From Podarcis muralis (Eukaryota), in assembly GCF_964188315.1 (NCBI RefSeq), contig NC_135671.1, positions 35,898,001-35,962,000 on the forward strand: a stretch of DNA of 64,000 nt. The letters run 5' to 3'. Below the pieces are notes generated by a model, which saw only the letters and a program-made list of their open reading frames with translations, was not told where the DNA came from and did not search any database. The position numbers and the translations under genes are program-made. Below are positions 615 to 48,327 of this stretch, in pieces. The number at the start of each line of letters is the position of its first letter. Position 1 is the stretch's first letter.

Positions 615-3600
615 TCACAGAATACATCCTTTCAACCAGGCAGACAAATCAAGGCCTTCGCAATTTTCCCTCCAACCCATCCTAAGTGAGAGAAAGAAAG
701 GGAATCTCATTAAAGAGAAATTCATTGATAAACTCAATAAATATGGGATGTAAATTTACAGGATAGCTTCTGCTGTACAAGTCCCAAAGAAACAGACAGG
801 AAGAGTATAACCTGTGCTTGGAAGAAACTCATTCAAATTAACTGATGCACTGAATAAATTCAAAAACCTCTGGATCACACCTGAGAGTAGTTCCTATAAT
901 TTCCAGGTGAGCTAAATGGTGGAAATGAGGACAATTTTTAATTCAATTCGATCTGTGTTTGATTGTGGCCATTGCATTTACCATTTTAAACTATCTGAAA
1001 AGTGATGCTGCAGCAGACCCTACAAGTGTCCCTATTTTCCAGGGACACCCCTGATTTAGAGAAGCTGCCCCGTTTCTGATATGATCCTGAAATACCCTAC
1101 TTTTCCTTAGGATGTCCCTATTTTCATTGGAGAAATGTTGGAGGGTATGGAGTTATCCAACCCCCAAGCCATCTAAATGTAATCCTGCATAGGGAAGGGT
1201 TTTTTTGTTAATGTTTAATGTTTTCTTATGTTTTTATATATGTTGGAATCTGCTCAGAGTGGCTGAGGCAACCCAAGTAAGATGTGTGGGGTATAAATAG
1301 TAAAATTATCCTTATCGAATGAGACGTCCCTATTTTCATCGGAGAAATGTTGGAGGGTATGCTGCAGTTTAAGATTAAAGCTCATGATTGTTGGAAAGAA
1401 GAAATGAAACAAGTGTTCACATTATACTGGGGATGGTGGGGTTTTGAAAAAATGTTTCTTAGTCTTCTTAAGTGGGGCGCAGGTGGCGCTGTGGGTTAAA
1501 CCACAGAGCCAAGGACTTGCCGATCAGAAGGTTGGCGGTTTGAATCCCCGCGACGGGGTGAGCTCCTCTTGCTCGGTCCCTGCTCCTGCCAACCTAACAG
1601 CTCGAAAGCATGTCAAAGTGCAAGTAGATAAATAGGTACCACTCCGGCGGGAAGGTAAACGGCATTTCCATGCGCTGCTCTGGTTCACCAGAAGCGGCTT
1701 AGTTATGCTGGCCACATGACCCGGAAGCTGTATGCCGGCTCCCTCAGCCGATAAAGCGAGATGAGTGCCACAACCCCAGAGTAGGACACGACTGGACCTA
1801 ATGGTCAGGGGTCCTTAAGCAGATTTTATACTTTAGCAATTTAAAATTCTGAAGACTGGGGGGGGGGGAATGCTGAGAACCACGAGAATGAATTGTGAAC
1901 TGAGCTGTGAACTGAACTGAAACAGAATTAGTTGCTTTCTGGAGGGGTGAACTGGAACAAAGTCCTTTTTAAAATGAACTTTCCGAGCCCTGAGCATAAC
2001 TCCATCTTCACCAACTGGATGATTTGGACTACAACTGCCATCAGCCCCTGCGTCGTATGCTTGTCCCAGATGGGGCTCATGGGAACTGTAATCCAATACA
2101 TCTGGACGGCACCAGACTGGCAAGGGCCACCAGGGCCACCATAACCAGACAACTAGCTTCTGCACAGCTGCAGAGACATCATGGTCCACTGGAATCTGAA
2201 TGGTCAAGGGATCTATAATGTCAGGCTTACAATATGATTCTTCTAAGGGCCGTAGCTCCATGGTAGAGCATCTGGTTTGCTTTGCAGAAGGTCCTGGGTT
2301 CAGACCCCAGGAGCATCTCCAGGTAGGGCTGGAAGAGACCACCTGAAACCTTGGACAGTCACTGCCAGTCAGTCTAGGCACAATTGAGAGAAACATGCCA
2401 ATGATCTGACTCAGTATGGCAGCTTCTATCTCCTATGAGCCAGTGATAAACTCCTTAGACTGGGGTAGCTGGCAGGGGTCTGATAGGGGTTGGAGTCCAC
2501 CACTGTGGGCAGCTAGCGTGTGTAATAGTCAGGGTGCCATACTAGGATGTGGGAGACCAGGGTCCAAATCTCTACTCAGCCATGAAGTTCACTGGGTGAT
2601 GAGCGTCAGCCCTACAACATCTGTAGGGCCACAGCTTCCTTACCCCTGAACTGTGGGGCTGTTATTGCATTTGTTCAGTCAATGAACAAATCTGGTCTGC
2701 TGAGGTTACCATAAACAAGATTTTGTAAGAACAGGCCCAGTGACTCCCGATCAGCTAACATTGAGATCTGAATTTTATGGACTTTGAAATCTCTCTGTTA
2801 TTTAAAAGTGCACCAGACTTAATGAGAGATTTTTACTTGGGGATTTTGTGGCTTTGCAAGGCAATTGTTCATTTTTACTTTTAAAATTATACTGTGCATC
2901 AGATCCTTGTATGTGTTTGTGGTTTCTAAGTGCTATGTATTATATTAAAACAGATCATTGCAATTCTGCACTATACACTACAGTGGTACCTCAGATTAAG
3001 AATTTAATTCGTTCTGGAGGTCTGTTCTTAACCTGAAACTGTTCTTAACCTGAAGCACCACTTTAGCTAATGGGGCCTCCTGCTGCTGCCATGCTGCCGG
3101 AGCACGATTTCTGTTCTCATCCTAAAGCAAAGTTCTTAACCCAAGGTACTATTTCTGGGTTAGTGGAGTCTGTAACATGAAGTGTATGTAACCTGAAGCG
3201 TATGTAACCCGAGGTACCACTGTATATATTCGCATCCTGAATAGAACGTAAGATGCGATGGGTGTCTGTGTGTGTGCGGGTCGCGTTTTGCTGCTTCCGC
3301 GCATGCGCGCGCCGTCATTTTAAGTGTCTGCGCATGCGCAAGCAGCGAAGCCCAGAAGTAACGCACTCCATTACTTCCGGGTTGCCGTGGAGCACATCTT
3401 GAAAGCATCAACCTGAAGCACATTCAACCCGAGGTATGACTGTACTTTACAGTGGTACCTCGGGTTAAGTACTTAATTCGTTCCGGAGGTCTGTTCTTAA
3501 CCTGAAACTGTTCTTAACCTGAAGCACCACTTTAGCTAATGGGGCCTCCTGCTGCCGCCACACCGCCGGAGCACAATTTCTCTTCTCACCCTGAAGTTCT

Positions 3601-6600
3601 TAACCTGAAGCAAAGTTCTTAACCTGAAGCACTATTTCTGGGTTAGCGGAGTCTGTAACCTGAAGCGTATGTAACCTGAAGTTTATGTACCCTGAGGTAC
3701 CACTGTAATAATAATTTCTGTTGCTTGATTTCTTTGGATTTTTTCAACACTGGTTTACCATCCATCTTAAGAGACAAGATCCTTCTGATGGCTGGTTGTC
3801 CAGAGGATGGAGACTAGCAGTAAGGCTGGATATCACCACGGTGCCTTGCTAACAAATTCCCCTGTTTTGCTTAGCATGCAGCAGAAGTGCAGGACCTAGT
3901 GGTGGTCACCAGATTCTACCCCACTACCCCCGAGAGATCCCCTTACCATGCTCCTAGGCCTCTTGGTCCTTGTGCTATCCTCATGGCACAGACAATGTCA
4001 TCCTTGATGTCACTGGTCAGCAGATCTGTGGGGACAGAGGAAAAGCAGGCATGAGGGGCTGAGGCAACACCCTAGACTCCTACTTCTGGCAGAGGTGACC
4101 TTCTGCAGAGAAGAAGCCTGCAGAGGTGACCCATGAGTTACAACTTCCCTCCGGAGCCTCTCTCCAACCAGCTCCTTAGCCTGCGTCTTGTGCCTTCCTA
4201 TTGGAAAGAGAATATCTCTGCAGACCAGCACATCCCCCTGGTACAGAAACCCCCAAAATGTCTGCCAAGAGACATAAACATGCCATGAGATGGACAGCCC
4301 TCCATAATTTGCTAGGCTACAACTCCCAACATCCCTGGCCATTGGTCAGGCTAGCTGAGGCTGATGGGAGTTGTATTCCAACAACACCCAAAGGTCCATG
4401 GGTTCCCCATTCCTTCTCTAAGAGGACGGCAGGGAATCAAAGTCTCCCACCTGCGTGGATGTTTGCCTGTTGCTTCTCTGCATTATACCTGGGTCTGGCT
4501 TGGCCAGCTTCTGATGAAGCAGGCTTGGGGCACAGGTAATTCTGCCTTGTTGCCACATTGTCTGGGCATGGACCTTTCAATTGCAGCACCTTGGAGGAAG
4601 CTGCCACTGTCTCTCTCCCTAGGTCCCTGTGCTTGCCCTCTTCCAATCAGAAGGTGTGTGTCCAAGATCAGTGGCTCACGCAGAAATGCAGGGCTCCACT
4701 GAGTGGACTTCACAAGCAAAGGTGGCAGCAGATGCTGCAGTCCCTGCAGGGAACTCTGCTGCAACCTGGTCCCTTTAGGCTGCAGCGCAGCGCCCTCTAA
4801 TGCCAGGATGTAGAACTGAAGCCAACCCACTTCAGAGCTCACCGCTGCAATGCATTTTGCAGAAGTTCGGCTGGAAGTGTTTGTAATCTTCACACCAAAG
4901 GTGGCTGTTGATCTGGAAGATGCCATTGCTGGTGCTGCCATCAGCTTCGTGGTCCACAATTGCCGTGTCAAAGTGGCTCTCATAGAAGGCCAAGCAGACC
5001 CCTATAAGGTGGAGAGGGAGAAGGATCCAGGAATTCTGCGCCAAGATTAACACAAATTCTGCTCCAGGAAATGCTGGGGTTTGGGCCACCTGTATAAATT
5101 ATGCAAATTAAGCATATTTACATATAGGTCCTTGTTTTGCATAATTTATTTGCGTCTGTCAGTCATGCAGGAAGGACAAGGAGCTAGGCAGGACACACAT
5201 GCTTCATAGTGATTCATGCAGCAAGGTGGCTCAATTATTGCAATGTGCTCCATGCAAGGCTACACTTGGGCCTGGCCTGCAGGCTGCCGCTGGTGCAAGA
5301 GGCTGCAGCTAGACTGTTGACGGGAACAGAGCAACACCAGCACATAACCTGAGTGCTCAAAAGCTTGCACTGGCTGCCCACACCTGGGCCAGGCTCAAGG
5401 TGTTCGTCTCAATTTACAAGACGCTTAACAACATGGGCCCAGGATACCTCAGAAACCGCTTGAATCTTTATATCCTGCCCAAGCCCTGCGGTTTCCAGGG
5501 GAGACACTGGTAGCGGTCTCCCCACCCCCCACCCCACCCCGGCTAAGATGCACAGCTTAAATTTCCCAGGCAGAGTCCATTCGGCATTTCGGGCCCAATT
5601 TTATGGAACCGCTTTCCAGATGAGGTCAGACAGGCTCCCTCCCTTTTGAACTCCCAGAGCCTGTTGAAAATTGCTATGCCAGCAGTCATTTTAACTGAAT
5701 TCTGATTTTATAATTTGAACCAATGTTCATTTTCACTGTCTTCAGTTTGCCGTACACTGCTTAGGAACGGATGACTGCAATTAAGCAGTAGATAGATTGT
5801 CATAATATATAAATAATAAATAACTAAACGTACATTTCCAAGTCTTTCTTTTCACAGTCATGAGGGCTAGAAATATGCCGTTTTCTTTAGGGGATTAAAG
5901 CTCGCACATTCTCACCACTAAATTTCATGTGACACTTTTTTTTTTACTGCCCTTGCACATGCTTGTAAGAAAAAACTTTCCAAACTGTGTGTCGTAACAC
6001 ATTAGTGTGTCGGCTGCAGTGTGTAGGTCTGTTGCATGAACAGTCCCTGTGATCCTCCTGGGACTGGAAAGGGGTCAGTTTAACTTCTGGTTTGCTAGTA
6101 AAACTGAATTAGTAAAGGTAAAGGGACCCCTGACCATTAGGTCCATTCGTGGCCGACTCTAGGGTTGCAGCACTCATCTCACTTTATTGGCTGAGGGAGC
6201 CGGCATACAGCTTCCGGGTCATGTGGCCAGCATGACTAAGCCGCTTCTGGCGAACCAGAGCAATGCACGGAAACACAGTTTACCTTCCCGCCGGAGCAGT
6301 ACCTATTTATCTACTTGCACTTTGACGTGCTTTGGAACTGCTAGGTTGTCAGGAGCAGGGACCGAACAACGGGCGCTCACCCCGTCGTGGGGATTCGAAC
6401 CGTCGACCTTCTGATTGGCAAGTCCTAGGCTCTGTGGTTTAACCCACAGCACCACCCGCGTCCCACTGAATTACTGTGTCACAAAATGATGCATGTCTAA
6501 AAAGTGTGCCACCAACAGGGAAAGTTTGGAAAGCTCTGCTGTAGAATATGCAGCCCTGATTATTACAACCGCCCCACCCCAATACCCAGGTCCTGAACAG

Positions 6601-6856
6601 GAGGCCCAGGAGATCCTGCTCCCCATACATGAGGGCTGACCTCGGTTCAGGTGAGAGGGACGGAGGGAAGAGATGGAGAGAAGCACTCACAGTCAGCTAG
6701 ACTGTATCCACGGTAACCTTCCAAGCCAGACACCTTCAATAAGTGGGCCAGTTCACAGCGTCTGAAGATCTTTCCCCCAACTCTGGATGTAAAGCACATG
6801 AGGAGAGGCAGCAGCAAAAGCAGCTTCTTCCCTAAAAAAAGTGTTGGGAAGGACAT
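615..6856 (-). CDS. C-type lysozyme-like protein A (SPACA3/SLLP1-like), 4 coding exons, 156 aa
   Basis: Hand-spliced exons (-): 6856-6691, 5001-4843 (159 nt), 4025-3947 (79 nt), 681-615 (67 nt incl. TGA). All introns are GT-AG with phases 1/1/2, as in c-lysozyme genes. Protein [156 protein letters not shown] has 8 conserved Cys. The motif [14 protein letters not shown]...D(H/Y)EADGST(S/N)NGIFQINS matches SPACA3 as recalled. Orthology untested. Confidence 0.92.
1475..1815 (+). mobile_element. Sauria SINE
   Basis: tRNA-like head (TGGCGCTGTGG A-box, GGTTTGAATCC B-box) and conserved body TGCAAGTAGATAAATAGGTAC. Lies in gene A intron 3. Confidence 0.9.
2246..2432 (+). mobile_element. tRNA-derived SINE (Squam2/Anolis-SINE2-like)
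   Basis: Head gtagctccatggtagagcatctg..ggttcagaccc followed by catctccaggtagggctgg..ctgccagtcagt. A diverged copy lies at about 42090-42290. Confidence 0.55.
2981..3222. mobile_element. Tc1/mariner (Tigger/pogo-like) MITE
   Basis: TIR cagtggtacctc..gaggtaccactg, flanked by TA on both sides. Confidence 0.85.
3450..3705. mobile_element. Tc1/mariner (Tigger/pogo-like) MITE, second copy
   Basis: Same TIRs and TA TSD. A related partial element ending aacccgaggtatgactg lies at about 3225-3442. Confidence 0.85.
5385..5825 (+). mobile_element. Degenerate L2 LINE 3' fragment
   Basis: L2-like ORF2 remnants (cccaattttatggaaccgc) and an aataaataa tail. Other L2 3' fragments at about 10710-11000, 16090-16350, 29740-30010, 33650-33790, 39080-39190, 46217-46420 and 61482-61870. 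Confidence 0.55.
6112..6464 (-). mobile_element. Sauria SINE with 9-bp TSD
   Basis: Full length with (ACCTTT)n tail. TSD actgaatta at 6103-6111 and 6465-6473. Confidence 0.92.
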
Positions 6857-10345: not shown

Positions 10346-10701
10346 GGGGACGCGGGTGGCGCTGTGAGTTAAACCACAGAGCCTAGGGCTTGCCGATCAG
10401 AAGGTCAGCAGTTCGAATCCCCACAATGGGGTGAGCTGCCATTGCTCGGTCCCTGCTCCTGACAACCTAGCAGTTCCAAAGCACGTCAAAGTGCAAGTAG
10501 ATAAATAGATACCACTCCAGAGGGAAGGTAAACGGCATTTCCGTGCGTTGCTGTGGTTCGCCAGAAGCGGCTTAGTCATGCTGGCCACATGACCCGGAAG
10601 CTGTACGCTGGCTCCCCCAGCCAATAAAGCGAGATGAGCGCCGCAACCCCAGAGTTGGCCATGACTGGACCTAATGGTCAGGGGTCCCTTTACCTTTTTT
10701 C
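10346..10701 (+). mobile_element. Sauria SINE with 9-bp TSD
   Basis: Full length. TSD ccacagtta at 10337-10345 and 10702-10710. Confidence 0.92.
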
Positions 10702-11572: not shown

Positions 11573-14500
11573 ATGAAGGCTCTTTGGCTGCTGCCCTTCC
11601 TTGCTGGTCTCCTCACCACAGGAGAAGGCATGATCTATGGCCGCTGTGAGCTGGCTCAGAGGCTCCAGCAGTTGGGCTTAGATGGTTATGCTGGCTATAG
11701 CCTGGCCAACTGTAAGTCCATTGGGGGACATCTGGGTATTGGCTAGGCAAGCATTATGAAAAGATAGAATTTATCTGAGTGGGGGGCAGCAGGGGGCAGC
11801 GGCGGCAGGTGGCTGTGCACTACATCTGGGGAGAGTGCTTAATCTTCTGGGTCTGACTGTCTAGGTGTGTAGCTGTAATTATGAGAGGAAGGTGTCCTCC
11901 CTCCGCATTTCTATAGCTAATTTGGAACATGCCATGCTGCATCCTGCTATAGGGCTGCTATAGGACGCAGGTGGCTCTGTGGTCTAAACCAAGAGCCCTT
12001 TGGGCTTGCCAATCGGAAGTTTGGGGGTTCAAATCTCCACGATGGGGTGAGCTCCCGTTGCTCTGTCCCAGCTTCTGCCAATCTAGCAGTTCGAAAGCAC
12101 ACCAGTGCAAGTAGATAAATAGGTACTGCTCCAGCGAGAAGGTAAATGTGGTTTCCGTGCACTCTGGTTTCTGTCATGGTGTCCCGTTGGGCAGAAGCGG
12201 TTTAGTCATCCTGGCCACATGACCCAGGAAGCTGTCTACAGACAAATGCCGGCTCCCTCAGCCTGAAAGCAAGATGAGCGCCACACCCTACAGTCACCTT
12301 TGACTGGGGTCCTTTACCTTTTTACCTTATAGGGCTGCAGGAATAGGGTGTAAATGATGTGTGTGAATGAATGAATCAGGGTGAAGAATGTGGTTTGTGC
12401 ATCCACATAAGTGGAAGGGTGCAGCGTAGAGGTGGATGTGATGAAGTCAGGAACTCACTGGACAGCTGGATTTTTTATTTTTATTTTTGAATTTGCATTT
12501 TATTTATTTGTTAACATTCTTATATTACATCGGTAAATGTTGTCATATTACATTACAGGACATACTATAATATAATTTCCAACATGTATACAAAAATTAT
12601 ATAAAAATTTTATATGCCTAGAAAGAAAATGAAACAAAAAAAGAAAGAAAGAACAAAGAGGAAGGGGAAAAACATCCCCCCCAAATCATATACATACCAA
12701 CACACTAGACTTCCTGTCTTTCCCGTTGTATATTCCTTTTTTACAAATGAATGTACTCTTATTATTGTATGTTTCTTTACATATTATCTAATACATTCCT
12801 ATATCAATATGTGCTCTCAATGTATTTCTCAACTCAATCTCACTCCAATGTCAATCAAATGCTAGCATAGATAGCGAACCTTTACTGTATTTTTGAACAT
12901 GTTTTATATCTATCCCACTTTTCCGTAAATTTTTGTTTTGAATTGCCTCTCAGGGTATTTGTTAACTGCACCATTTCAGCAAATTCTTGTAGCTTATAAT
13001 GCCAGTCTGTTATTGTCGGGGGTTCTTGTTCCTTCCACCCCTTTGCCACCAAAGTCCGCAGCTCGGACTCACTGGACAGTTGGATAAGGCAGGATTTCGA
13101 AACACGTGTGGGTGTGAAGAATGGGGCATCCTCCTCAGAATCTGCGCACTTAGTTCTGACCGTATCATGCCTTCTGTCTCAGGGGTCTGCACAGCATGTC
13201 ATGAGAGCAGCTACAATACCCAGGCCATACACTACGACTCTGACGGCAGTGCTGACTATGGCATCTTCCAGATCAACAGCCGTTACTGGTGCCAGAGTCC
13301 CAGCGAGCCAAGTTCCAACATATGCGGAATTCAATGCTCTGGTGAGAATCGGCTTCTCCTGGAGGGAGATTTGTCTCTTTCAGAGATGGAGAACCTTTGG
13401 CCCACCAGATGTTGATAGTCTACAATTTCCACTATCCCAGACCATTGGTCTTGCTGGCCGGGGCTGATGGAAGTTAGAACCAAAATGACATCTGGAGGGC
13501 CACAGGTTCCCCACCCCAATCTAAATTGTGATGCACAGCACATCAATTGCTTCTGGGAGACAGAAAGGATCAGTTGTCCTTCCTCACCCTGGAACATTCT
13601 GCTTCAGCTCTTTGCAGGTGTGGCATTTGCACTCCCAAAGAGAAAAAGTCAGATAGCTGTGGTTCAGTGGTCTAGGTTGACCAGCTTATTCATATGTTGA
13701 TGTATCTGCTGGCTGGGAAAGCCCGTTTCCTACCTGAAATGCAGCCCTCCTAGCCAGGAGATTTCAAGTTCCACATGTAGTCTGTTTGGACATTAAATTG
13801 TGTAGTCAGATCATAGAAGGTACATTTATTTGACTTGGAATTAGTAAGTGTATAGGGACTGTTCCCCATTTTTTACCCTCTGGATACAAAAGGCTATTTC
13901 AAGCTGCATGCCAGGTGGGAGGGGAGAAAAGGTTGCAACTATGGGAGAGTCAGGCGATATTGTCCGGCCCTTTTTACATCTCTTTTGTCCCTTCAAAACT
14001 GCACCAGGCCTATAACATCCCAACAGGGCCCCTTCATGCCAGCGGTGGAGCTGGCCGCTCGGGCGCCTGGAATGGTGCACATGTCGTGCACCCGGGGGCA
14101 GAGCGATCCGCCAAGGGGGTGGGACAATCGCACAGTCCGCCCAGGGGGGATTTTGTCACCCCCACTCTGGGATGACATCTGGGGTAGGCTGCCCCCCCCC
14201 CACCCCTGCTTCATGCTCCTATTGCATCTGCTTTCCTTGCAGAACTGCTGACGGACAACATCGCCGTAGACGTGGCTTGTGCTAAGGTTGTCGTTGACAA
14301 TTCACCCAACGGACTGGGTGCCTGGTAAGAAGCCCGTGAACTGTTGGGAGAAGGGTCTTCCCTTGTGAGAGGTGGAGGGACACCCTAAACACCACAATCA
14401 CTGCAGAAGCACCAGTTCCCTCTGAGCTGGGGAATATGAGGGTGCCACAATTATGTTAGAAATACTCCTGTTTGATTTGAAAATGGAAGCGACGGTTGAG

Positions 14501-15784
14501 TTGAGGTGTGTCCACTTGAGACAGTCATTGCAAATGTGCAGATGAACAGAATAGAAGTTGAACAGAAGTCTTGGGGGGGGGGGTTGAATGTACAGGGAAA
14601 CAAATCAGGTAACAAGCCTTGGATGAAGACATCCCCAACCTGCCCCCCCACCCCCAGGTCTGTAAAGGTAAAGGTAAAGGTACCCCTGCCCGTACGGGCC
14701 AGTCTTGACAGACTCTGGGGTTGTGCGCCCATCTCACTCAAGAGGCCGGGGGCCAGCGCTGTCCGGAGACACTTCCGGGTCACGTGGCCAGCGTGACATG
14801 GCTGCTCTGGCGAGCCAGAGCCGCACACGGAAACGCCATTTACCTTCCCGCTAGTAAGCGGTCCCTATTTATCTACTTGCACCCGGAGGTGCTTTCGAAC
14901 TGCTAGGTTGGCAGGCGCTGGGACCGAGCAACGGGAGCGCACCCCGCCGCAGGGATTTGAACCACCGACCTTTCGATCGGCAAGCCCTAGGCGCTGAGGC
15001 TTTTACCCACAGCGCCACCCGCTGTACACCCAGGTCTGTACAGCAATGTAAAAATGTGAGTTGGGAGACAGCAAGGGAACGACATCACTCTGTTTCAAGC
15101 CACTAATGTGCACACAGTCTAAGTTGCCATGCCTATGAAATGTGCTGCATTTCAGTTTTTCAAGGGGGGCCCATGGCAATCTGTTAGATCAGGGGTAGTC
15201 AACCTTTTTATACCTACCGCCCACTAATGCATCTTTCTTGATGGTAAAATTTCCTTACCACCCACCAGTGCTCGATGGAAGGAGGATTCAGCTTGTGCCG
15301 TAGAACCCACTACCGCCCACCTAGACTCCTGAAACACCCACTAGTGGGCAGTAGGGAGCAGGTTGACAACCCCTGTGTTAGATGATATCAATTAATATAT
15401 GTTCTTTAACACATCTATTTTAGTTAAGAAAGTTTCGCATAGGGAAACAAGTCAAGTGATAAAACAAAAGCATTGTGCACACTCATGTTTTCTCTGTATC
15501 CAAAGTATTCCCACCACTGGTTTGTGAAACAGTGTGCACACAACCGTAGCCACAAACTATGTCGATCCAGTTGTGATATAACTGTGTTTTGATGCATTCT
15601 CCCCTCACCCCCAGCCAGCTTCAATCCAAATGGAGAAAATGGACAACCTAGCTGTGTTTGGAGCTGATAAAATGCACGCACAGTTCATTTTTCATATCTG
15701 TTCATTTTCCCCTCCAGGGTGGCATGGCGATTACATTGCCAAGGTCAGGACCTGTCTCAATACGTTGCAGGGTGCGACTTGTAG
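11573..15784 (+). CDS. C-type lysozyme B, catalytic Glu35/Asp52 intact, acidic, 148 aa
   Basis: Exons (+): 11573-11711, 13183-13341, 14243-14324, 15718-15784 (TAG), all GT-AG. Protein [152 protein letters not shown] box upstream and AATAAA downstream. Confidence 0.93.
11959..12327 (+). mobile_element. Sauria SINE with 11-bp TSD
   Basis: More diverged copy in gene B intron 1. TSD tatagggctgc at 11948-11958 and 12328-12338. Confidence 0.9.
12470..13010 (-). mobile_element. L1 LINE 3' fragment
   Basis: Minus-strand translation [29 protein letters not shown] matches the squamate L1 ORF2 C-terminus pattern, followed by an A-rich 3' tail. Confidence 0.7.
14665..15022 (-). mobile_element. Sauria SINE (second subfamily) with 12-bp TSD
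   Basis: 3' part ggtacccctgcccgtacgggccagtc. TSD cccaggtctgta at 14653-14664 and 15029-15040. Confidence 0.92.
15190..15375. mobile_element. hAT-type MITE with 8-bp TSD
   Basis: TIR caggggt(a/t)gtcaacct. TSD tgttagat at 15182-15189 and 15376-15383. Confidence 0.85.
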
Positions 15785-33300: not shown

Positions 33301-35167
33301 CCAGCTGCCAGTCTTTTGCAGCCTATGAACTCTTATGAAATGGCTTACTAACATTCTGAACAAGAGTAAGATATCCTTTAAAAAAAAAGAGATCATATTC
33401 TGCCTGCATTTTAGAGCTGGATGATTATGTTTCAATGTATTAGCATTTTAAATTATGTAATTTATATTTTTGAGCTGCATTGTTGTGTTTGGAGGGATCA
33501 ACATTTTAACATAAAAATATGAATTCAGCAATGTGTTATTACTGACAAGACTAAAAATGTGCTTACTAACCTAAGAGGTATTATGCTATTAAATCAAGCT
33601 CTGTTTTAATTTGAAAATATAAAACAAAAATGTCAGGAAAGGCCAGTAGTATAATAATAATAATAATTTATTATTTATACCCCGCCCATCTGGCTGGGCC
33701 TCCCCAGCCACTCTGGGCGGCTTCCATAAAAACCACAAATACAGTAAAATATCACACGTTAAAAACTTCCCTGAACAGGGCTGCCCTGTTCCAAGTATGT
33801 ATTCCAAGGCCTGGAAGGCTGTGACCCTCCAAGTTTTTGCTTCAATCGTCCCTCACCATTGGCCGTGTTGGGTTGGGGCTGGTGGTAGCTTGAACAACAT
33901 CTGGACAGCACCAGGTTCCACACCTCTAACATACCATTTAGCAAGCTGTTCCATTTTCTGCAGCACCCCACCATTTTGCCTGTCCCCTCCGGCACAGTGC
34001 CACTTGTGGCGGAGGCAGGCAGGAAGGAACTCACCTGCACAAGACATGGAGCAAAGGTTCTCTGAAAGGGTACCTTCATCTTTACACCACCAGCCATTGT
34101 TGATATGGAAGATGCCGTAGTCTTTAGTGCCATCCTTGCGCCTGTCAATAGCCTCTGTGTCAAAGCCAGTCTCAAAAAACGACATGCAGATCCCTTCAGA
34201 GAGAAGAATAGAAGTTACACTCTGTAGTAGCGGCCAATTTATTGCAGATTACTAAAATATCAATCACGTTTCAAAAGACCACCAAATCGCCACAAACTTT
34301 AATCGGATTTTCATTGGATTGAAGTTTGCTCTGATTTAGCACTAAATTTGGAGAGAGTTTTTAGGGGAAAGTGGTGAGGCAAAGCAAAACAGCCTAGAAT
34401 GCATGAGACAAGCGGAAAACCGCCCAAACAGAAGTGTGCACAAGCCCTCAGCCAAAGTCTGCCCTTTCAGCTCAAAAACCGAGTTGCACATCTTCCAGGA
34501 TGTGCTGCCGGGTGAATCAATTGACGCGTGCTGTACTCTCACCCCCAAAAAGCACTTTTTTTAAGGGTGCAAGAGCGCAGCTCCCAAAATGGCCGCCATG
34601 ATCTCGTGTGAAAAAACAGGATGTCCCATTTTTTCTGAGGCACTTGGTGGGTATGAAGTCTTCATTCCTCAAATACATGTAGGGAAGGAGACATTTTTTC
34701 TTTCACTACAAATCATACAAGAATCCTCCAAATCTGGGGTAAGACAAGGCTTTACCAAGCCTCCACTGTTAAGTTGTGGGTGAACATATCAGACGACACA
34801 GTGATTCTTCAAACAGCTCTTCTTTATTCAGAGGCAGAACAGGACTGAACAGAGGAGCTCAGTCAGCCTGCTTATATGGAGCTCCAGAACAATGTAACTG
34901 TTGCCATTTTCTAAAACTATCCAATCACTGAACGTCACTTTCGATCCTTCATTTGCATACAAACTATCCAATCACTGAACGTCACTTTCGATCCTTCATT
35001 TGCATACAAACTATCCAATCACTGCTGGCCCAGGGTGAGAACTTCAGTACATAACATCCACATTTCCCTCATGATGGTTGTCCTGTCAGGTCAGGGCCCA
35101 GTGGGAGCTTCCCCCATCCTCAGGTGAAAAGCAGGTCAGCTGTGGCTAGGCGAGCTGGAGATGTGTG

Positions 35168-35212
<45 letters not shown>

Positions 35213-36025
35213 GACCCTAGTGACTGGCATGTCCCAAGATAAATTTGGTGACTGGGGCAGCAAGTAACCTGAGGCACCACCTGCCAGGAATTTTCCCTGC
35301 AAGAGGTCCTGTAATGTACAGGTGGAAAACTTGCAATCCCCCAGACATTGCTGCACATCAACTGCTATCATCCCTGCTCATGGGTCTTTGGCTGGCCGTT
35401 TAGGGTGTTAAAGGTCAGCACCAATACTTTGAATGTGGCAATGCAAAAAAAAAAAAAGGGCTCAGACACAGACTGGGAAAGCTTGCAAGTGTGCCTAGAA
35501 AAAGCAGGGCAAAAGGCAAGTGTCGATGAGCCCTGTGTCAGATCTGTGTACCTTCCATTTGTGTAACAGAAATCTGCTTCCAGAGAGGATCATCTCGTTG
35601 CCTTATGGCAACACTGGCTCAGAGCAAGAATGGGGAGTAGAGAAGCGTTCATTCAGAGAGGCATTCATTCATTCATTCATTCATTAGGTCTTCAGATAAT
35701 GGCGTGCTTTGGGGGAGCATTCATAAGAAGTAAACTGGGACAGGTTTTAGGCCAAAGCAAATAAATTGCTACCCTCTTGTGGACGTAGAGACAAGGAAAT
35801 GATGTCTGGAAAGACCATGGTTGTTATCTCACTCCTTCCCTCCCACAACATTTGAAGTATGCTCTGCATTGAGAAGCTACACTCACAGTTGGCCAGGCTG
35901 TACCCCTCATATCCATCCAGTCCGCTAACTTTCAGCACGTGGTACAACTCGCAGCGACCAAAGATCTTGGCTTGCACAGTGACGGCAAAGCAAGTGAGGA
36001 GGAGGGTCTGTAATAAGTGGATCAT
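30375..36025 (-). CDS. C-type lysozyme-like protein C (resembles Ca-binding lysozyme / LYZL1-2), Glu35/Asp52 intact, 147 aa
   Basis: Exons (-): 36025-35887, 34193-34035, 32156-32078, 30441-30375 (TGA), all GT-AG. Protein MIHLLQTLLLTCFAVTVQA-KIFGRCELYHVLKVSGLDGYEGYSLANWICMSFFETGFDTEAIDRRKDGTKDYGIFHINNGWWCKDEGTLSENLCSMSCADLLNTDIHDDILCVKRIVKDPQGMGTWKEWKKHCEKQDLREWVKGCNP has 8 Cys. Confidence 0.92.
32478..32699 (+). mobile_element. 5'-truncated Sauria SINE
   Basis: Body from gtgcaagtagataaat to the ggggtccctttaccttt tail. Head missing. Confidence 0.85.
34767..35056 (-). mobile_element. Solo LTR (290 bp) in intron 1 of lysozyme C
   Basis: TGTTA..TAACA termini and 5-bp TSD tccac (34762-34766, 35057-35061). 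The minus strand carries a TATA (plus ttatat 34872-34877) and AATAAA (plus tttatt 34823-34828). Internal 47-bp tandem duplication. Confidence 0.85.
35171..35210. repeat. (TG)20 microsatellite
   Basis: Read directly. Confidence 0.95.
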
Positions 36026-36542: not shown

Positions 36543-36878
36543 CTGTGGGTTAAACCACAGAGCCTAGGACTTGCCGATCAGAAGGTCGGCAGTTCGAATC
36601 CCCGCGACGGGGTGAGCTCCCATTGCTTGGTCCCTGCTCCTGCTAACCTAGCAATTCAAAAGCACGTCAAAGTGCAAGTAGATAAATAGGTACCTTTCCA
36701 GGAGGGAAGGTAAACGGCATTTCCGTGCACTGCTCTGGTTCGCCAGATGCGGCTTAGTCATGCTGGCCACATGACCCAGAAGCTGTACGCCGGCTCCCTC
36801 GGCCAATAAAGCGAGATGAGCGCCGCAACCCCAGAGTCGGCCACGACTGGACCTAACAGTCAGGGGTCCCTTTACCTT
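36543..36878 (+). mobile_element. Sauria SINE nested in an L2-type 3' end, 13-bp TSD
   Basis: TSD taccccgcccatc at 36530-36542 and 36879-36891. The host repeat is seen uninterrupted at 33650-33790. Confidence 0.92.
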
Positions 36879-37323
36879 TACCCCGCCCATCTGGCTGGGC
36901 CTCCCCAGCCACTCTGGGCGGCTTCCAAGAAAGATTAAAAATACAAGGGCACACATTCCCCATCCCTACTTTAAACAAAAGCAGATGGGTGGGCTGAAGT
37001 ACAAGGCTTTTCATCTATCTTTCCCTGACCCTTCAAATGAGTCTAGCTCTCAGTCTCTTCCTTGGAGGTAGAAGGGAGAGAGCTGCATCTTATGTCAAAG
37101 GTAAGCTAAGGCAAGGCGCAGAGAAGCTGTCAGCTCTACCGGGTGTGCAATGTGCTTAGCCACCTTGTGATTCTGAGTTGGAAATACATCAGTATATAAC
37201 TGTCCAACTTCCACTCATCCACATTATTTGAACACAAACAATGCCCTCCGTTGAGGAGCTGGATTCACAAATGGCCTGGCTATGATCTTAGGAACACAGA
37301 CTCCCAATCTCATGTTACTTGTA

Positions 37324-40649: not shown

Positions 40650-43600
40650 TCACAGATTGCAGGCGGCGACCCAGTAACTCAGATCTCTGCCGCGGCAATG
40701 ATCTCTCCAGCCATACCTAAGGAGAAAGGGGGAGCAGGGAGAGAAAGAAATGCAGACAGCATGCGAAGCCAGTCATGAGCCAGATGGATCCATGGCCTTA
40801 CTCTGTATACGGCAGCTTCTTATGTACTTCCATTGTAATGAAATGGAAAAGTGTGACATGATAGCATCAGGCTGTGCATTCCTCCACATCTGCCTCGTGT
40901 TGCTGGAGGACTGTGGGGAATTTGAATAGTGGCTCACAGAACCAGCCATCTGGTATGGGGGTCCCAGGGTAGCTGTCAGTCTCCATGGTCCCTGCTAGGA
41001 TGGGACGTTGGTGGAAACCAAATGCTGGACCCAGCAGGGTTCTTCTTAACTGAGGAGCCAGCAAAGTTTGGAGGTCCTAGTTGTACAACGGTGTGTCCTG
41101 AATGCATGCCCTTGTTGAGAACAGCAATCTGAGCACACCATTAGTTAGACCCCCCCACACAGATGTTGGGGAACCTGTGGCCCTCCAGATGTTGCTGCAC
41201 CACAACTCCAATCATCCCACCCCATTGGCCATTAAGGTTGAGGCTAATGCAAGTTGGGAGTCCAACAATATCCTGGGCAGGGGAGCACAGGCAGTGGCGT
41301 AGCGTGGGTTGTCAGCACCCGGGGCAAGGCAAGTAATTTGCGCCCCCTAACCCGTGGATTTGCGCCCCCTAACCCGTGGATTTGCGCCCCCTAACCCGTG
41401 GATTTGCCCTAACCCCAGATGTTGCGCCCGGTGCGGCCGCCCCCCCCCGCACCCCCCACGCTACGCCACTGAGCACAGGTTTCCCACAGCTGACACAGAC
41501 AAAGGACACGGAGAATGCTTATTTATAGTATCTCCCTGAAATTGCTGGGAGGAGAAATCAGACTGTGTTCTTGACAGGGTGGTTATTCTTCTCGTGTGTC
41601 TATGACTCACTTGCCTATGTGATTATCTGGACATCTCCACTACTTTTGGGGTCTCTCTTTGGCCCACTTGTCTTTGGGGTCTGAAACTTGGAACTGGGTC
41701 ATACCAATTTAGATTGCCAATGGGGATTCACAGGATTGCATGCTCCCTCATACAAAAACATCCCTGAACATAACAAAACTCATTGTCAGATAGCATGTCT
41801 ATGTAGGGTGTTGTTTTGTTTTGTTTCGTTTTGTTTTGTTTTGTTTCATTTCGTATGAAGAAGCATCCAAGTCTTTGAGTGCAATCTGAGTGATGCAGCA
41901 CAGACTCAGGTTTACAACCTCAGAAAGAACTAGGCCTTAATCTGCACTTAAATTATCTTTTTGGGGTATCCTTGCCTTGTCTCGTGTGCCTAAAAAATCT
42001 GAATCTCTTTGCTCTGTAGATAATTTACTGCAGTGCCCTCTCTTTGTGGGTCAGTCTGGTCCAGAATGCAGAGGTGATCTGTGATGGAGTGATAGTCCTC
42101 CTGGCTTTGGGCAAAGTGAGTGCAGGGAATGGACCAGAACTCTCCAGCATCTTCAGTTTAAAAGGATCAGGTGATGGATCAGGTGATGGGAAAGACTCAT
42201 TTCTGCCTGAGAACCTGGAGAACTACTGCCAAACAGATTAATCTCAGTACTAGACGGCATTGACTTGCAATAAGTTAGTTTCATATGTCTAGATGACTAT
42301 GTGTTCATGAGTACCCAAACCTGAGGTTTAGTCCCAATGCCAGATTTCAGGACCCAGGCTATTGGGGAATACAACTGTGTGTTTGACTGCATCTGCAGTT
42401 CTGTTATTTGAAATATTTCTCCCACTCAAACACTGATCAGGATGGCAAATTTTTATTATTATTTTTACTACTATTAATTCAAGGTTTCAAACCAGAAATC
42501 TTAAGCAATCATTCCTTCCTTGCCCACCCTCCAATAAGAACTGGAAAATGGAATTGGCACAGGTGCTTACTGCCAATGGGATTTTAAGGCTAGATGGACA
42601 GCTACCAGAAAGAGGAGATAATACAGAATGGAAAGATGGGTGGAGCAGGTAGACAAGGCTACTGAAAGACAAACTCATCCCCTTACCAGTCTGCCAAGCC
42701 TTCTGGTTCAGCTGTAGCTCGCTTGAGACAGATTATGTCATCAATAATTTCTTCGGTAAGTAGATCTAGGGTGTGAGGAGGAAATGGCAATATTATGTAC
42801 TGTACAATAATATACTGTTGGCATCTGTCTGTCTTGAGAGACAATGGAGTGTGCCTCTGGGGGTGAAGTCAAATCACTATATTAGCAGTATCAAAGTGAC
42901 TCCCCCCCCCCCCAGGGTGCAGGACAGGCAGATTGTATGGCAGCTTGGCTACAGGAGTTGCCAGAAGGAGGTGCACAAGGAGCCATCCAACTGCCTTAGG
43001 GACTCCACTCTGGATTCATGTAGGGTTTACTCCCTTGCCTATTCCTCTCCTGAAGATATCCCACAAGGCAGCAGAGATTTAGGATCAGATTTTCCTTCTC
43101 CTAGATGAGCTACCTTCCCAGGTTGACGAGCCTTATCTACCCCTCAATTCCCTCTACAGCACATGCAAAAACTTCCTTCTTGACCGTTGAACCCTCTAAT
43201 GGTCTCATTAATACATACTGAGATAAATGTTGTTAAATAATTATTTATACTGAGCTATCTGTGTGCAGCAGTTTCAGCAGAGTGCAAAAGGCCAGATTGA
43301 AACGGATTGTTTGCAGGTTGGTCCTATCATTAGGCAGAGTGATGCAGCTGCTTCAAGAGGCAAATGCCCAGCAAGGGAGGGACTACGTTGAGAGTGAGAT
43401 CTTCTCAAAGGAAGATTAAGGAGTGCTTAGGGCTTGTGGGGGTGTACTTTGATGCCAGTGACCATTTCTTTTGATTTCCAAACATGCCCCTGTGTCCCCA
43501 AAGGTCGGTGACCCTGGCCTAATGAAAGGGCAATGAGTGGTTGGTGGTTGGGTGGCTAAAACAAGAGAGTTGGAACAGCCTGTGGTTCAGAGGAAGTGAT

Positions 43601-46219: not shown

Positions 46220-46305
<86 letters not shown>

Positions 46306-48327
46306 TTTATTTATATCCCGCCCTCCCCAGCCGAAGCCGGGCTCAGGGCGGCTAACAACAATAAAACAGTACAAAAGTACAGCACAAACAACACTCTAAA
46401 ATCATTCATTATAAAATTACGTAGCTGTTTTACTACAAAGGAATTTCAGAAATAGACTGGAAAGAGAAGCTGCTGAGTTGCAACTCATTACTAAACTTAA
46501 AACCATGGAGAAACCTGGTCTGAACAAAGACATTGGATTCTTATCTCATTATATATGACAAAGCCAATTTTCACCTTCTCACCCCTTGCTTTTTCCTGTA
46601 AGACCTATTGCAGTCGTTAAGAGTCGTCAACAGGCTCACCACAGCTATCTGCCCATCACCCATTCCCACCACCCTTCTGAGTAATACCCCTCCCCACCTT
46701 CTCACTATATAGAAGGATCTGGCAACTTCTGTTTCAGTGTATCTGAAGAAGTGTGCATGCACACGAAAGCTCATACCAAGAACTAACTTAGTTGGTCTTT
46801 AAGGTGCTACTGGAAGGAATTTTTTTTGTTTTGTCTGTATTCAGGTTAGCAAAAACAACACAGCTGTGGAACTTCTTGCCATAATAAAAATTCTGTGGCA
46901 AACAATTCAGCAATTTCCAAAGATAGAATATTCAGTTGCCAGTTGATTATGCAAACTCTGCCGCCATCTTCTACCACTTTGTGTCTGGCTCCGCCCCAGT
47001 GCCACCATTTTGTGACTGGTGGGCCTCAGTAAATTTCAATCATTTCAAGTGGGCCCTTAGGGTAGAAAGTCTGAGAAGCTTTCCAAAGCATAATGTCCAT
47101 TGTTGTTTTCTTCAAAGTGGATTTGTCGTACTAGAGCAACAGAGTGCTTTAATCTACTTCTAATGCAGAAACCTGTAATTTCAGCATGCACTTGAAACCC
47201 GGCTGCAAAATATTGAGACTGGAGGCTAGAGCTGCCATACTTCAAAAAGTAAAAACCAGGAAACCACCAAAATTGTTGAGCTTTTTAAAGGGAAACCCTA
47301 AAATTCACCCCAGACGTCAATTCCACCTTTGAAATCCCAGTACAGTGGTACCTCGGGTTAAGTACTTAATTCGTTCCGGAGGTCCGTTCTTAACCTGAAA
47401 CTGTTCTTAACCTGAAGCACCACTTTAGCTAATGGGGCCTCCTGCTGCCGCCGCACCACCGGAGCACAATTTCTGTTCTCATCCTGAAGCAAAGTTCTTA
47501 ACCCGAGGTAATATTTCTGGGTTAGTGGAGTCTGTAACCTGAAGCGTATGTAACCCGAGGTACCACTGTATTGTCCAGGAAAATCTGAGCATATGGCAGC
47601 CAGAGCAAGTTGGGAAACTGGTTTCTTGGGGCCACTTTAATTTCTGCCCACACACTCAATGGCTTTCTGCAAACTTCTCCTTGCCCACATACAAGCTGAT
47701 CCTGCCAGTTTTGGTGATGCACCATGTCTTCATAAAGGTAAAGGTACCCCTGCCCGTACGGGCCAGTCTTGACAGACTCTAGGGTTGTGCGCCCATCTCA
47801 CTCAAGAGGCCGGGGGCCAGCGCTGTCCGGAGACACTTCCGGGTCACGTGGCCAGCGTGACAAAGCTGGATCTGGCGAGCCAGTGCAGCACACGGAAACG
47901 TTGTTTACCTTCCCACCAGTAAGTGGTCCCTATTTATCTACTTGCACCCAGGGGTGCTTTCGAACTGCTAGGTTGGCAGGCGCTGGGACCAAGCAACGGG
48001 AGCGCACCCCGCCGCGGGGATTCGAACCGCCGACCTTTCGATCGGCAAGTTCTAGGCACTGAGGCTTTTACCCACAGCGCCACCCGCGTCCCATACCCTC
48101 TTCATACCCTCCCACAAAACACATACCCTCTTCATACCCTCCCACAAAACACAGTAAGCAAACTGACAACCGCTCCTTGGCTACTCACAGTTAGCTAAGC
48201 TGTAGCCCTCATGCCCATCCATTCCCCAGCGTTTCAGTGTCTGCGCCAGCTCACAGCGACTGTAGATCTTGCTACGGACTTTCACCGCAAGGCAGGCCAT
48301 AAGGGGCAGCAGCAAAAGAGCCTTCAT
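40650..48327 (-). CDS. C-type lysozyme-like protein D, predicted non-catalytic (Glu35Ala, Asp52Glu; SPACA5/SPACA3-like motifs), 147 aa
   Basis: Exons (-): 48327-48189, 46055-45897, 42765-42687, 40716-40650 (TGA), all GT-AG. None of these exons is called by the ORF track. Protein [147 protein letters not shown] has 8 Cys. Confidence 0.92.
41292..41471. mobile_element. hAT-type MITE (same family as 24049-24206) with 8-bp TSD
   Basis: TSD agcacagg at 41284-41291 and 41472-41479. Carries one more 22-bp unit than the other copy. Confidence 0.87.
42820..43200 (+). mobile_element. Interspersed repeat (probable RTE/Bov-B-like LINE 5' region), copy 1
   Basis: Homologous to 62180-62640 (gagacaatggagtgtg..ggggtgaagtcaaa..ccttagggactccactc). 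Family name inferred from recall. Confidence 0.5.
44375..44540 (+). mobile_element. CR1 LINE 3' end
   Basis: ggactctccttccttggaggtttttaagcagaggctgga..ggttggactagatgacc..ggtcccttccaactc. Further CR1-type fragments at about 17237-17320, 44130-44370, 44560-44870, 52170-52270 and 53300-53350. Confidence 0.75.
45060..45378 (+). mobile_element. L2 LINE 3' fragment with (AAT)/(AGT)n tail
   Basis: gggccttctcagtagtggcacccaccctgtggaatgcc ([13 protein letters not shown]) followed by a microsatellite tail. Confidence 0.65.
46217..46303. repeat. Compound (AGT)n(AAT)n microsatellite (L2 tail)
   Basis: Read directly. It explains the poly-S/N, poly-V/I and poly-Y ORFs. Confidence 0.95.
47343..47568. mobile_element. 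Tc1/mariner (Tigger/pogo-like) MITE
   Basis: Same family as 2981-3222, TA-flanked. Confidence 0.87.
47735..48092 (-). mobile_element. Sauria SINE (second subfamily) in gene D intron 1
   Basis: Full length. tcttcata occurs at both 47727-47734 and 48099-48106. Confidence 0.9.

Follow-up and report, generated by a model that had tools for sequence, protein, structure and literature searches.

Four divergent c-type lysozyme genes in a probably ancient cluster of the common wall lizard

A window of 64 kb (the whole stretch of DNA that was analysed) from Podarcis muralis contains four intact four-exon c-type lysozyme (GH22) genes, here called A to D, at positions 615-48327, and these are in all likelihood best explained, taken together, as a conserved ancient cluster of four divergent paralogues, each with its own biochemical character. 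The duplication that produced A would have preceded the split between mammals and reptiles, those that produced B, C and D would have preceded the split between turtles and lizards, and each gene would since have kept its own character. Every one of the four genes was already predicted in public annotations, and the set fits the known family of sperm-type lysozyme-like genes and is largely ordinary.

Gene structures

A first-pass annotation of the window had described four intact paralogues with a shared 4-exon structure, and splice-consistent models bear this description out: every intron is of the GT-AG type, the phases are 1/1/2, and no internal stop occurs in any of the models. The exons measure 139 (166 in A), 159, 79 (82 in B) and 67 nt, and the products have 156 (A), 148 (B), 147 (C) and 147 (D) amino acids. 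Application of the four-exon plan to public orthologue proteins reproduced five of them exactly. Position 615 is the last base of the stop codon of A and position 48327 the first base of the ATG of D; B lies on the forward strand and the other three genes on the reverse strand. The exons of the four genes are as follows.

6691-6856, reverse strand: A exon 1, 166 nt, with ATG, a leader of about 28 aa and a mature chain starting KIFRRCEL
4843-5001, reverse strand: A exon 2, 159 nt, with Glu35 and Ser52 (Pfam PF00062, E 1.3e-12)
3947-4025, reverse strand: A exon 3, 79 nt, matching exon 3 of the related squamate protein P0044
615-681, reverse strand: A exon 4, 67 nt including the stop codon
11573-11711, forward strand: B exon 1, 98% identical to the lacertid protein P0205
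13183-13341, forward strand: B exon 2, 159 nt, with Glu35 and Asp52 plus one additional Cys near position 33 (Pfam E 2.4e-17)
14243-14324, forward strand: B exon 3, 82 nt, one codon more than in A, C and D
15718-15784, forward strand: B exon 4, 67 nt
35887-36025, reverse strand: C exon 1, 139 nt
34035-34193, reverse strand: C exon 2, 159 nt, with Glu35, Asp52, Trp62 and Trp63
32078-32156, reverse strand: C exon 3, 79 nt, in which the calcium loop (Asn85, Asp90, Asp91) is partial
30375-30441, reverse strand: C exon 4, 67 nt
48189-48327, reverse strand: D exon 1, with ATG at 48327, 99% identical to Podarcis raffonei P0169
45897-46055, reverse strand: D exon 2, 159 nt, with Ala35, Glu52 and Ser at 62
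42687-42765, reverse strand: D exon 3, 79 nt
40650-40716, reverse strand: D exon 4, 67 nt
50921-51028, reverse strand: possible upstream alternative first exon of D (tblastn of P0169 residues 1-36, 97% identity)

Motif scans and tblastn searches with the window's own exon peptides matched each of the four exons exactly four times, and no fifth lysozyme copy was found in the 64 kb. Positions 20375-46025 are 100.000% identical over 25,651 bp to the public P. muralis record OZ076971.1. The cluster is carried on a 42.5-Mb chromosome of this species, the common wall lizard.

Isoforms of A and D other than those modelled here may exist. Public Ensembl models of A replace exons 3 and 4 with a different, non-homologous 3' end, and for D the upstream exon found in P0169 (isoform X2, 194 aa, of the sister species P. 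raffonei) adds 47 N-terminal residues; the product given for D in the P. muralis annotation has 225 aa.

The length of exon 2, which had been put forward as a distinctive mark of the array, is indeed 159 nt in all four genes, but it does not set them apart. SPACA3, SPACA5, LYZL6, fish LYZ and the C and D clades commonly have an exon-2 equivalent of 159 nt with 52 full codons, and among the subfamilies compared only mammalian LYZ has 54 codons; because the length is common across the family, it is real yet not distinctive of the array.

Catalytic residues, charge and neighbouring genes

The exon-2 peptides of A to D each score 48-64 bits against Pfam PF00062 (cut-off 27), and all of the exon-1 peptides match positions 1-27 or 3-27 of this profile. 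The mature chains of A, C and D contain the eight conserved cysteines (four disulfides), and that of B contains one more, nine in all. The residues at positions 35/52 (lysozyme numbering) and at the calcium-site positions 85/90/91, the counts of Lys+Arg and Asp+Glu in the mature chain, and its pI are given below.

A: Glu/Ser; Thr-Asp-Asp; 12 and 17; pI 5.6
B: Glu/Asp; Thr-Val-Asp; 5 and 13; pI 4.4
C: Glu/Asp; Asn-Asp-Asp; 17 and 21; pI 5.5
D: Ala/Glu; Thr-Asp-Asp; 12 and 17; pI 5.3

The gene models thus confirm the catalytic pairs read in the first pass for all four genes, and the computed charges are identical to those that had been counted by hand. Glu35 and Asp52 are present together only in B and C, and these two of the four genes probably encode active enzymes. 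The full calcium triad Asp85/90/91 occurs in none of A to D; Asp-Asp-Asp is present in bat and shrew Lysc1 and in one anole C-type protein.

The classical cationic antibacterial LYZ is a basic protein for which a YEATS4/CPSF6 genomic neighbourhood serves as a criterion (PMC3141428), whereas A to D are acidic and adjoin each other, an Ig-like gene and a homeobox gene. The earlier view that none of the four is a classical cationic lysozyme is therefore sustained by both pI (4.4-5.6) and genomic neighbours. The accompanying description of the array as all anionic is also accurate, but as a remarkable trait it does not hold, because acidity is usual in non-LYZ members of the family: buffalo SLLP1, LYZL5 and LYZL6 have pI values of 5.2-5.6 (PMC5104373), and the protein table compiled in the present work displays the same tendency. 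Eight lysozyme-like genes have been reported in the anole (PMC3141428).

The neighbouring features in the window are the following.

27261-27734: V-set ORF of an Ig-like gene (Pfam E 2.2e-13)
58138-58617, forward strand: paired-like homeobox exon (Pfam Homeodomain, E 3.3e-13), divergent neighbour of D

The Ig-like gene, which is not a lysozyme, lies between B and C; public gene calls give it 244 aa with V-set and C1-set domains, and in Anolis sagrei the B-type gene has the same neighbour on its downstream side. The best PDB matches of the homeobox exon are paired-class homeodomains, and a homeodomain gene of 228-229 aa occupies the same divergent position beside the D-type gene in Sceloporus and Gekko.

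Age of the cluster

Trees were computed with IQ-TREE under LG+C20 from sets of 81 and 58 rows that do not contain mammalian LYZL1/2, LYZL4, LALBA or bird LYZ, and the deeper orthology which they provide for B, C and D is therefore incomplete. Pairwise identity among A to D is 46-53%, and each gene falls within its own strongly supported clade of orthologues, which comprises squamates together with mammals or turtles and in which its catalytic state and charge are kept. The gene order is homeobox, D, C in Sceloporus, homeobox, D in Gekko, and A, B, Ig-like gene in Anolis sagrei; it is partly conserved in the tortoise Gopherus, where a D-like gene is followed by a C-type gene in a tandem pair.

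These observations indicate, at the level of sequence, that A to D are ancient, divergent paralogues and not recent copies. The opposite reading, that they arose by recent tandem duplication within one lineage and are kept for dosage, their differences being noise, would fit their location within 48 kb, their single exon plan and the presence of three of them on one strand, but it is contradicted by the low identity, by the separate orthologue clades across squamates and beyond, by the paralogue-specific residues and charge kept clade-wide, and by the same gene order in Anolis, Sceloporus and Gekko. Forcing a single sauropsid clade, moreover, costs 37.8 log-likelihood units, with a borderline AU p of 0.048. 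The dosage reading is close to refuted and has scarcely any chance of being correct; the rejection of simple dosage duplication in the first-pass annotation is supported by the same identities, clades, clade-wide residues and charge, and gene order, and by purifying selection on B and D. The dN/dS ratios are 0.24 (against Sceloporus) and 0.27 (against Gekko) for D, and 0.15 (against Anolis) for B.

Gene A and SPACA3

By its place in the trees, gene A is the orthologue of SPACA3/SLLP1: it lies in a squamate SPACA3 clade (99/92) that is sister to mammalian SPACA3 (100/97, and 99/96 in the 58-row tree). Exons 1 and 2 match, with 100% identity, the Podarcis muralis models P0151/P0040, which are named ‘Sperm acrosome associated 3’, and the best PDB match of exon 2 is mouse SPACA3/SLLP1 (4yf2, E 1.7e-16, ungapped; next match 1.2e-10). 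Like the mammalian proteins, A is acidic and has lost Asp52, but it keeps Glu35, whereas in mammals both catalytic residues are gone (position 35 is Thr or Ala and position 52 is Asn); the 163-aa mammalian proteins compared also carry a long N-terminal extension, in place of which A has its leader of about 28 aa. Glu/Ser at 35/52 is kept clade-wide in A-type orthologues, and this pair has been published for SLLP1 of python, cobra, garter snake and anole (PMC5104373). With Glu35 retained, Ser52, and Leu at position 62, A would most likely be a binding protein without lytic activity, secreted or acrosomal, as in mammals, and its orthology with SPACA3/SLLP1 supports, by homology, a role as a sperm protein.

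Gene D, a lysozyme-like protein without Glu35

The D clade has 100/100 support in the 81-row tree, and the upstream gene of the tortoise tandem pair, which has Ala35/Asp52, joins it at 100/98 in the 58-row tree. Ala35/Glu52 is found in about 25 squamates, and the cysteines are invariant among D-type orthologues. The AlphaFold model of a D-type protein (a public protein with 99% identity) has a pLDDT of 91.8 and superimposes on trout, hen and human lysozymes and on mouse SLLP1 with TM scores of 0.95-0.98 and rmsd values of 0.6-1.1 A, so that the lysozyme fold is, as modelled, kept. The general acid is gone (Ala35), and Glu stands at 52 and Ser at 62, while the full fold, the eight cysteines and purifying selection are kept; D would most likely be a catalytically dead, glycan- or protein-binding lysozyme-like protein. 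For D as for A, loss of activity is suggested by analogy with mutant lysozymes.

Lactalbumin is a non-enzymatic member of the lysozyme fold, and D has undergone the same kind of active-site change as alpha-lactalbumin (LALBA), with loss of the general acid and Glu at the Asp52 position; it also shares the 159-nt exon 2 and the acidic character. The two differ in that D lacks a complete calcium site (Thr85) and belongs to a reptile lineage with a tortoise orthologue, whereas lactalbumin is confined to mammals, LALBA having no non-mammalian orthologue (PMC3141428). The resemblance, LALBA being absent from the trees, is best read as parallel loss of catalysis.

A different interpretation of D, of A or of both is that they are relics in decay or without function, on the way to becoming unitary pseudogenes. 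Each is without one of the two catalytic residues, D has lost Trp62 as well, and the public models of A end in the non-homologous 3' tail, all of which speaks for this reading. The reading frames of both genes are intact, however, with canonical splice sites; about 25 D-type orthologues, and several of the A type, retain all eight cysteines together with the structural tryptophans; the dN/dS of D is low and its predicted fold confident; and the Ala35-bearing lineage of D dates back at least to the split between turtles and lizards. Mammalian SPACA3, furthermore, works as a protein without both catalytic residues (PMC5104373). Decay is very improbable.

Genes B and C

Gene B belongs to a clade of squamates and turtles (100/98) placed inside the LYZ group (95/91), and the best PDB matches of its exon 2 are echidna and trout lysozymes. 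It resembles the conventional lysozyme c of hen, human and fish in having Glu35, Asp52, Trp63 and Trp108, together with Tyr62 as in human lysozyme. It differs in its pI, which is 4.4 as against 8.4-9.7 in the mammalian LYZ compared, in its ninth cysteine, and in its flanks, which are the SPACA3 orthologue and the Ig-like gene instead of YEATS4/CPSF6-type neighbours. All of the squamate and turtle B-type proteins sampled have Glu/Asp and a pI of 4.0-5.0, and exon 3 has the same 82-nt length in the Anolis sagrei orthologue. B would most likely be an active muramidase for a low-pH or special secretory setting.

Over its whole length the product of gene C shows 100% identity with P0187, a Podarcis muralis protein annotated as ‘lysozyme C, milk isozyme-like’, and the model has the same span, 5,651 bp, as the public gene. 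C falls in a squamate clade (100/96) beside a turtle clade, and Glu/Asp with Trp-Trp-Trp is kept clade-wide. Its exon 3 is closest, among PDB matches, to the calcium-binding dog and horse milk lysozymes (Lysc1), but C is without the full calcium triad, and bat and shrew Lysc1 do not group with it. The 81-row tree groups C and its turtle relatives with mammalian SPACA5 (93/86), a link that the 58-row tree does not resolve, and the clade is possibly related to SPACA5 (LYZL5): C shares the Asn85-Asp90-Asp91 loop and an acidic pI with dog SPACA5. SPACA5 differs from C in having Glu at both 35 and 52. C keeps its catalytic pair, the full set of three cleft tryptophans, and two of the three aspartates of the calcium loop; it would probably be an active SPACA5/calcium-lysozyme-like enzyme.

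Tissue roles and a possible ancestral cluster

The first-pass annotation had proposed a subfunctionalised array in which sperm or oviduct lectin-like proteins stand beside digestive or egg enzymes; this particular division of roles is conjectural. A literature search found no expression report for the four paralogues, and PMC5104373 describes the expression of reptile SLLP1 as not yet known. One reading of their roles is that all four are male-reproductive proteins (of testis, epididymis or sperm) like mammalian LYZL/SPACA, with no division between reproduction and digestion, egg or defence. The orthology of A with SPACA3 and the grouping of C with SPACA5 in one tree point in this direction, as does the acidity which A to D share with buffalo sperm SLLP1, LYZL5 and LYZL6, and a separate clade of basic squamate lysozymes could perform the classical antibacterial task. 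Gene B, however, lies inside the conventional LYZ group and not with the sperm-type genes, and a homologue of ‘lysozyme C’ is highly abundant in iguana femoral-gland secretion (PMC8143647), which suggests that some squamate paralogue is used outside reproduction. An exclusively male-reproductive array is on balance unlikely, though far from negligible.

The conserved cluster may also be viewed, more speculatively, as the surviving piece of an ancestral amniote lysozyme-like cluster from which the dispersed mammalian SPACA3 and SPACA5 were derived, with D as an ancient dead lysozyme; this joint reading is tentative and is more probably wrong than right. D would then be a catalytically dead lysozyme found throughout reptiles and older than 250 million years, which would have lost Glu35 before the turtle-lizard split, gained Glu52 in squamates, and become a binding or regulatory protein, a reptile parallel to alpha-lactalbumin. 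If true, an ancestral cluster of this kind would contradict the published account, in which SPACA5 originated in placental mammals.

The tortoise C-type gene adjoins a TIMP1-like gene, which is only suggestive for the link with SPACA5; human TIMP1 and SPACA5 both lie on the short arm of the X chromosome.

Four complete lysozyme genes

The four c-type lysozyme (GH22) genes in the window, namely A (the SPACA3/SLLP1 orthologue), B (an acidic LYZ-type gene), C (a possible SPACA5 relative) and D (a member of a reptile clade without Glu35), were modelled from a reading of their splice sites. When the window was scanned for motifs in six frames and searched by tblastn with its own exon peptides, four copies of each of the four lysozyme exons were found, and no fifth lysozyme copy in the 64 kb. 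The exons are as follows.

6856-6691, 5001-4843, 4025-3947, 681-615, minus strand: gene A
11573-11711, 13183-13341, 14243-14324, 15718-15784, plus strand: gene B
36025-35887, 34193-34035, 32156-32078, 30441-30375, minus strand: gene C
48327-48189, 46055-45897, 42765-42687, 40716-40650, minus strand: gene D

All introns in the models are GT-AG with phases 1/1/2, there are no internal stops, and exon 2 of each gene passes the threshold of Pfam PF00062. The first-pass annotation had described four complete four-exon paralogues, each with a second exon of 159 nt, and both points are borne out by the splice-resolved models. The same models return the catalytic pairs (residues 35/52 in lysozyme numbering) that it had read, which are Glu/Ser in A, Glu/Asp in B and C, and Ala/Glu in D, and a recount of basic against acidic residues (K+R versus D+E) in the mature chains is identical to its own, at 12/17 for A, 5/13 for B, 17/21 for C and 12/17 for D. 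The models, exon lengths, residue pairs, charge counts and PF00062 matches thus confirm the original observation. The mature chains have pI values of 5.6 (A), 4.4 (B), 5.5 (C) and 5.3 (D), and the product of gene B carries a ninth cysteine.

Database searches were run exon by exon, and the full-length public proteins that they returned served as later references, while the joined models were used for residue counts, for local BLAST against the fetched proteins and for trees. Relatives were gathered with an exon-2 profile search and then with word searches seeded by full-length matches.

Phylogenetic placement

Two trees were computed, the first with IQ-TREE under LG+C20 from 81 proteins and 147 columns and the second from 58 proteins; both were built without mammalian LYZL1/2, LYZL4 and LALBA and without bird LYZ. 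In the 81-protein tree, A lies in a squamate clade (99/92) whose sister is mammalian SPACA3 (100/97), a position that agrees with the match of its exon 2 to mouse SLLP1 (4yf2; E 1.7e-16, ungapped, the next best match being 1.2e-10). B falls in a clade of squamates and turtles (100/98) within the conventional LYZ group (95/91). D belongs to a clade with 100/100 support and a long stem, whose sister group is not resolved. The squamate clade that contains C (100/96) and a clade of turtles (99/95) group with mammalian SPACA5, with support of 93/86. The 58-protein tree repeats the placements of A, B and D but does not recover the grouping of C with SPACA5 as resolved, and the C-SPACA5 link is therefore held to be tentative.

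Forcing the four sauropsid clades together as a single clade lowers the log-likelihood by 37.8 units (AU p 0.048), which is a borderline rejection obtained from a short alignment. The first-pass claim that the array does not consist of simple dosage duplicates is supported, and the cluster provides a starting point, open to testing, for tracing where the mammalian sperm genes SPACA3 and SPACA5 came from.

Stepwise loss of the catalytic pair in the D lineage

About 25 squamates, ranging from geckos to snakes, have D-type proteins with Ala35/Glu52, and in two squamate species position 35 is Thr or Ser; Trp62 is replaced in D-type proteins, and the majority of them are acidic. Upstream of the C-type gene P0238 of the tortoise Gopherus flavomarginatus lies a tandem neighbour of like orientation, next to a TIMP gene (the exon of which matches TIMP-1 best, at E 1e-5 versus 1e-3 for TIMP-2), and the best match of this neighbour's exon 2 is D.

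L007:3231-5967 (Gopherus flavomarginatus CM045977.1, about 3.05 Mb): tortoise D-type orthologue

Its exons of 139/159/79/67 nt encode 147 aa with Ala at position 35 and Asp at position 52, and in the 58-protein tree the protein groups with the squamate D clade at 100/98. Given this Ala35 orthologue in tandem with a C-type gene, the D lineage already existed, Glu35 had already been lost and the tandem order of D followed by C was in place before turtles and lizards split. Replacement of Asp52 by Glu occurs on the squamate side only, and the tortoise protein stands midway in the loss of the two catalytic residues. Catalysis was probably lost stepwise, and long ago, in these reptile members of the lysozyme fold, and Ala35/Asp52 in the tortoise versus Ala35/Glu52 in squamates provides a natural series in which to study the change from an enzyme to a binding protein.

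The ratio dN/dS (Nei-Gojobori) for D is 0.24 against Sceloporus and 0.27 against Gekko; for B it is 0.15 against Anolis sagrei and 0.09 against Gopherus, where dS is saturated. The four-exon plan rebuilt five public orthologue proteins exactly. An AlphaFold model of a D-type protein, computed from a family alignment of 104 sequences, reached a pLDDT of 91.8 (an earlier model from 17 close orthologues only, with a pLDDT of 54, was discarded) and superposes on the trout, hen and human lysozymes and on mouse SLLP1 with TM scores of 0.95-0.98. The structures that it matches include E35A mutants of the hen and human enzymes and Glu53 mutants of the human enzyme, which are laboratory versions of the natural substitutions in D.

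Conserved gene order

The order in the window is A (minus), B (plus), an immunoglobulin V-C1 gene (plus), C (minus), D (minus) and a paired-like homeobox gene (plus).

24773-29351, plus strand: Ig-like gene with V-set and C1-set domains, 244 aa in public calls, V-set ORF at 27261-27734
58138-58617, plus strand: paired-like homeobox exon, divergent to gene D

In Anolis sagrei a divergent lysozyme gene, a B-type gene and an Ig V-C1 gene are laid out as in the window, and the matching 247-aa V-set/C1-set gene downstream of the B-type gene shows that the linkage of B to the Ig gene is conserved between lacertid and anole. The homeobox exon stops at the usual homeodomain intron position, 46/47, and its PDB matches are of the paired class only; Sceloporus has the homeobox gene followed by D and then by exon 1 of C, Gekko has the homeobox gene and D, and the homeodomain gene at this D-adjacent position encodes 228-229 aa in both. 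The tortoise carries its B-type gene on the same chromosome as the pair of D-like and C-type genes, at a distance of 0.6 Mb. Within 10 kb of the box-turtle gene named "LYZL1" (P0196), no neighbour is informative. A second lacertid B-type gene, B', lies outside the array and far from A-D.

L001:10001-14854 (Podarcis lilfordi OX395142.1, about 1.15 Mb from one chromosome end): B' (protein P0208)

Its product has 82% identity with B, a pI of 4.5 and nine cysteines, and the gene adjoins a RAF-type kinase gene with RBD, C1 and kinase domains, on a P. lilfordi chromosome of similar size.

An interspersed repeat of about 350 bp, probably a SINE, is present in at least 12 copies, in both orientations, in the window, with 72-92% identity to copies at the P. 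lilfordi locus, and several copies lie within introns and flanks of the lysozyme genes.

1474-1816, 6112-6474, 10346-10698, 11963-12295, 14660-15022, 17477-17833: repeat copies
32479-32699, 36543-36882, 47733-48092, 55896-56268, 60202-60527, 62914-63151: repeat copies

Residues, charge and probable roles

Positions 35, 52, 62, 63, 108 and 85/90/91, the cysteine count and the mature pI were tabulated over all fetched relatives. The A-type pair is Glu/Ser, with Ala/Ser in Varanus; the Glu/Ser pair of SLLP1 has already been published for python, cobra, garter snake and anole (PMC5104373). B-type proteins have Glu/Asp and a pI of 4.0-5.0 in every squamate and turtle sampled, and C-type proteins have Glu/Asp, all three cleft tryptophans and a pI mostly of 4.1-5.6. 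None of the four genes has the full calcium triad, C having Asn-Asp-Asp. Gene B encodes its extra cysteine in exon 2 (window 13183-13341), two residues ahead of Glu35; this residue is common to lacertid B and B' and to the B-type proteins of Gekko kuhli and Hemicordylus, but the remaining squamate B-type sequences in the sample do not have it.

Acidity and the 159-nt exon are traits of the wider family rather than marks of the array, because they are shared with other clades and with the mammalian proteins: the exon-2 equivalent has 52 full codons in almost every clade and 54 only in mammalian LYZ, the fetched mammalian SPACA3, SPACA5 and LYZL6 are acidic too, and buffalo SLLP1, LYZL5 and LYZL6 have pI values of 5.2-5.6 (PMC5104373). 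Basic squamate lysozymes, with a pI of 8.5-9.1, form another clade (gecko, cordylid, cobra).

In lysozymes Glu35 is the general acid, Asp52 is the nucleophile or stabiliser, and Trp62, Trp63 and Trp108 line the cleft. On the basis of these established roles, the products of B and C, which are unusual in being negatively charged, probably have glycosidase activity, and A and D are probably non-lytic binders; by analogy with mammalian SPACA3, A probably acts on sperm. A "lysozyme C" homologue is highly abundant in the femoral-gland secretion of the iguana (PMC8143647), which shows that some squamate lysozyme paralogue is used in skin glands.

The diversity of lizard lysozyme-like genes has been known since 2011, when eight were reported in the anole (PMC3141428), and the A-type residue pair since 2016. 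A search of the literature on squamate lysozyme-like pseudo-enzymes found nothing, and neither a reptile-wide D lineage with stepwise loss of catalytic residues, nor a uniformly acidic B clade, nor the conserved gene order of the lizard cluster was found in the literature searched. These three are additions of modest interest to a known family, and the cluster reveals no new kind of system.

Public records and naming

All four genes are already public as automated predictions, as their matches to public lacertid proteins and models demonstrate. The product of C is identical (100%) to P0187, "lysozyme C, milk isozyme-like [Podarcis muralis]", and the gene as publicly annotated covers 5,651 bp, exactly as the model does; window 20375-46025 is 100.000% identical across 25,651 bp to P. 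muralis OZ076971.1 (about 35.9 Mb). The product of D has 99% identity with the P. raffonei protein P0169, and that of B has 98% identity with the lacertid cluster representative P0205. Two P. muralis "Sperm acrosome associated 3" models match A with 100% identity over exons 1-2, and both enter a non-homologous tail past exon 2. This alternative 3' end lies inside intron 2 of gene A (the window 4843-3947 region) and would cost the protein three of its eight cysteines. It stems either from an artefact of annotation or from a second form of the transcript; exons 3-4 as modelled here are the version that homology supports.

Names are inconsistent, with "lysozyme C-like", "milk isozyme-like" and "SPACA3-like" applied to one single orthologue group, and it is here that a checked, gene-by-gene map of the reptile lysozyme-like cluster has its value. 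An upstream exon of D (window 50921-51028, minus strand) is used in a public P. raffonei isoform, where it adds 47 residues before the signal peptide, and the D product in the P. muralis annotation has 225 aa. The top matches of the profile search (P0001-P0038) are 600-2,350 aa long, and in each of them the lysozyme domain is matched 3-10 times; they are either fusions of tandem genes in automated models or true multi-domain lysozyme proteins.
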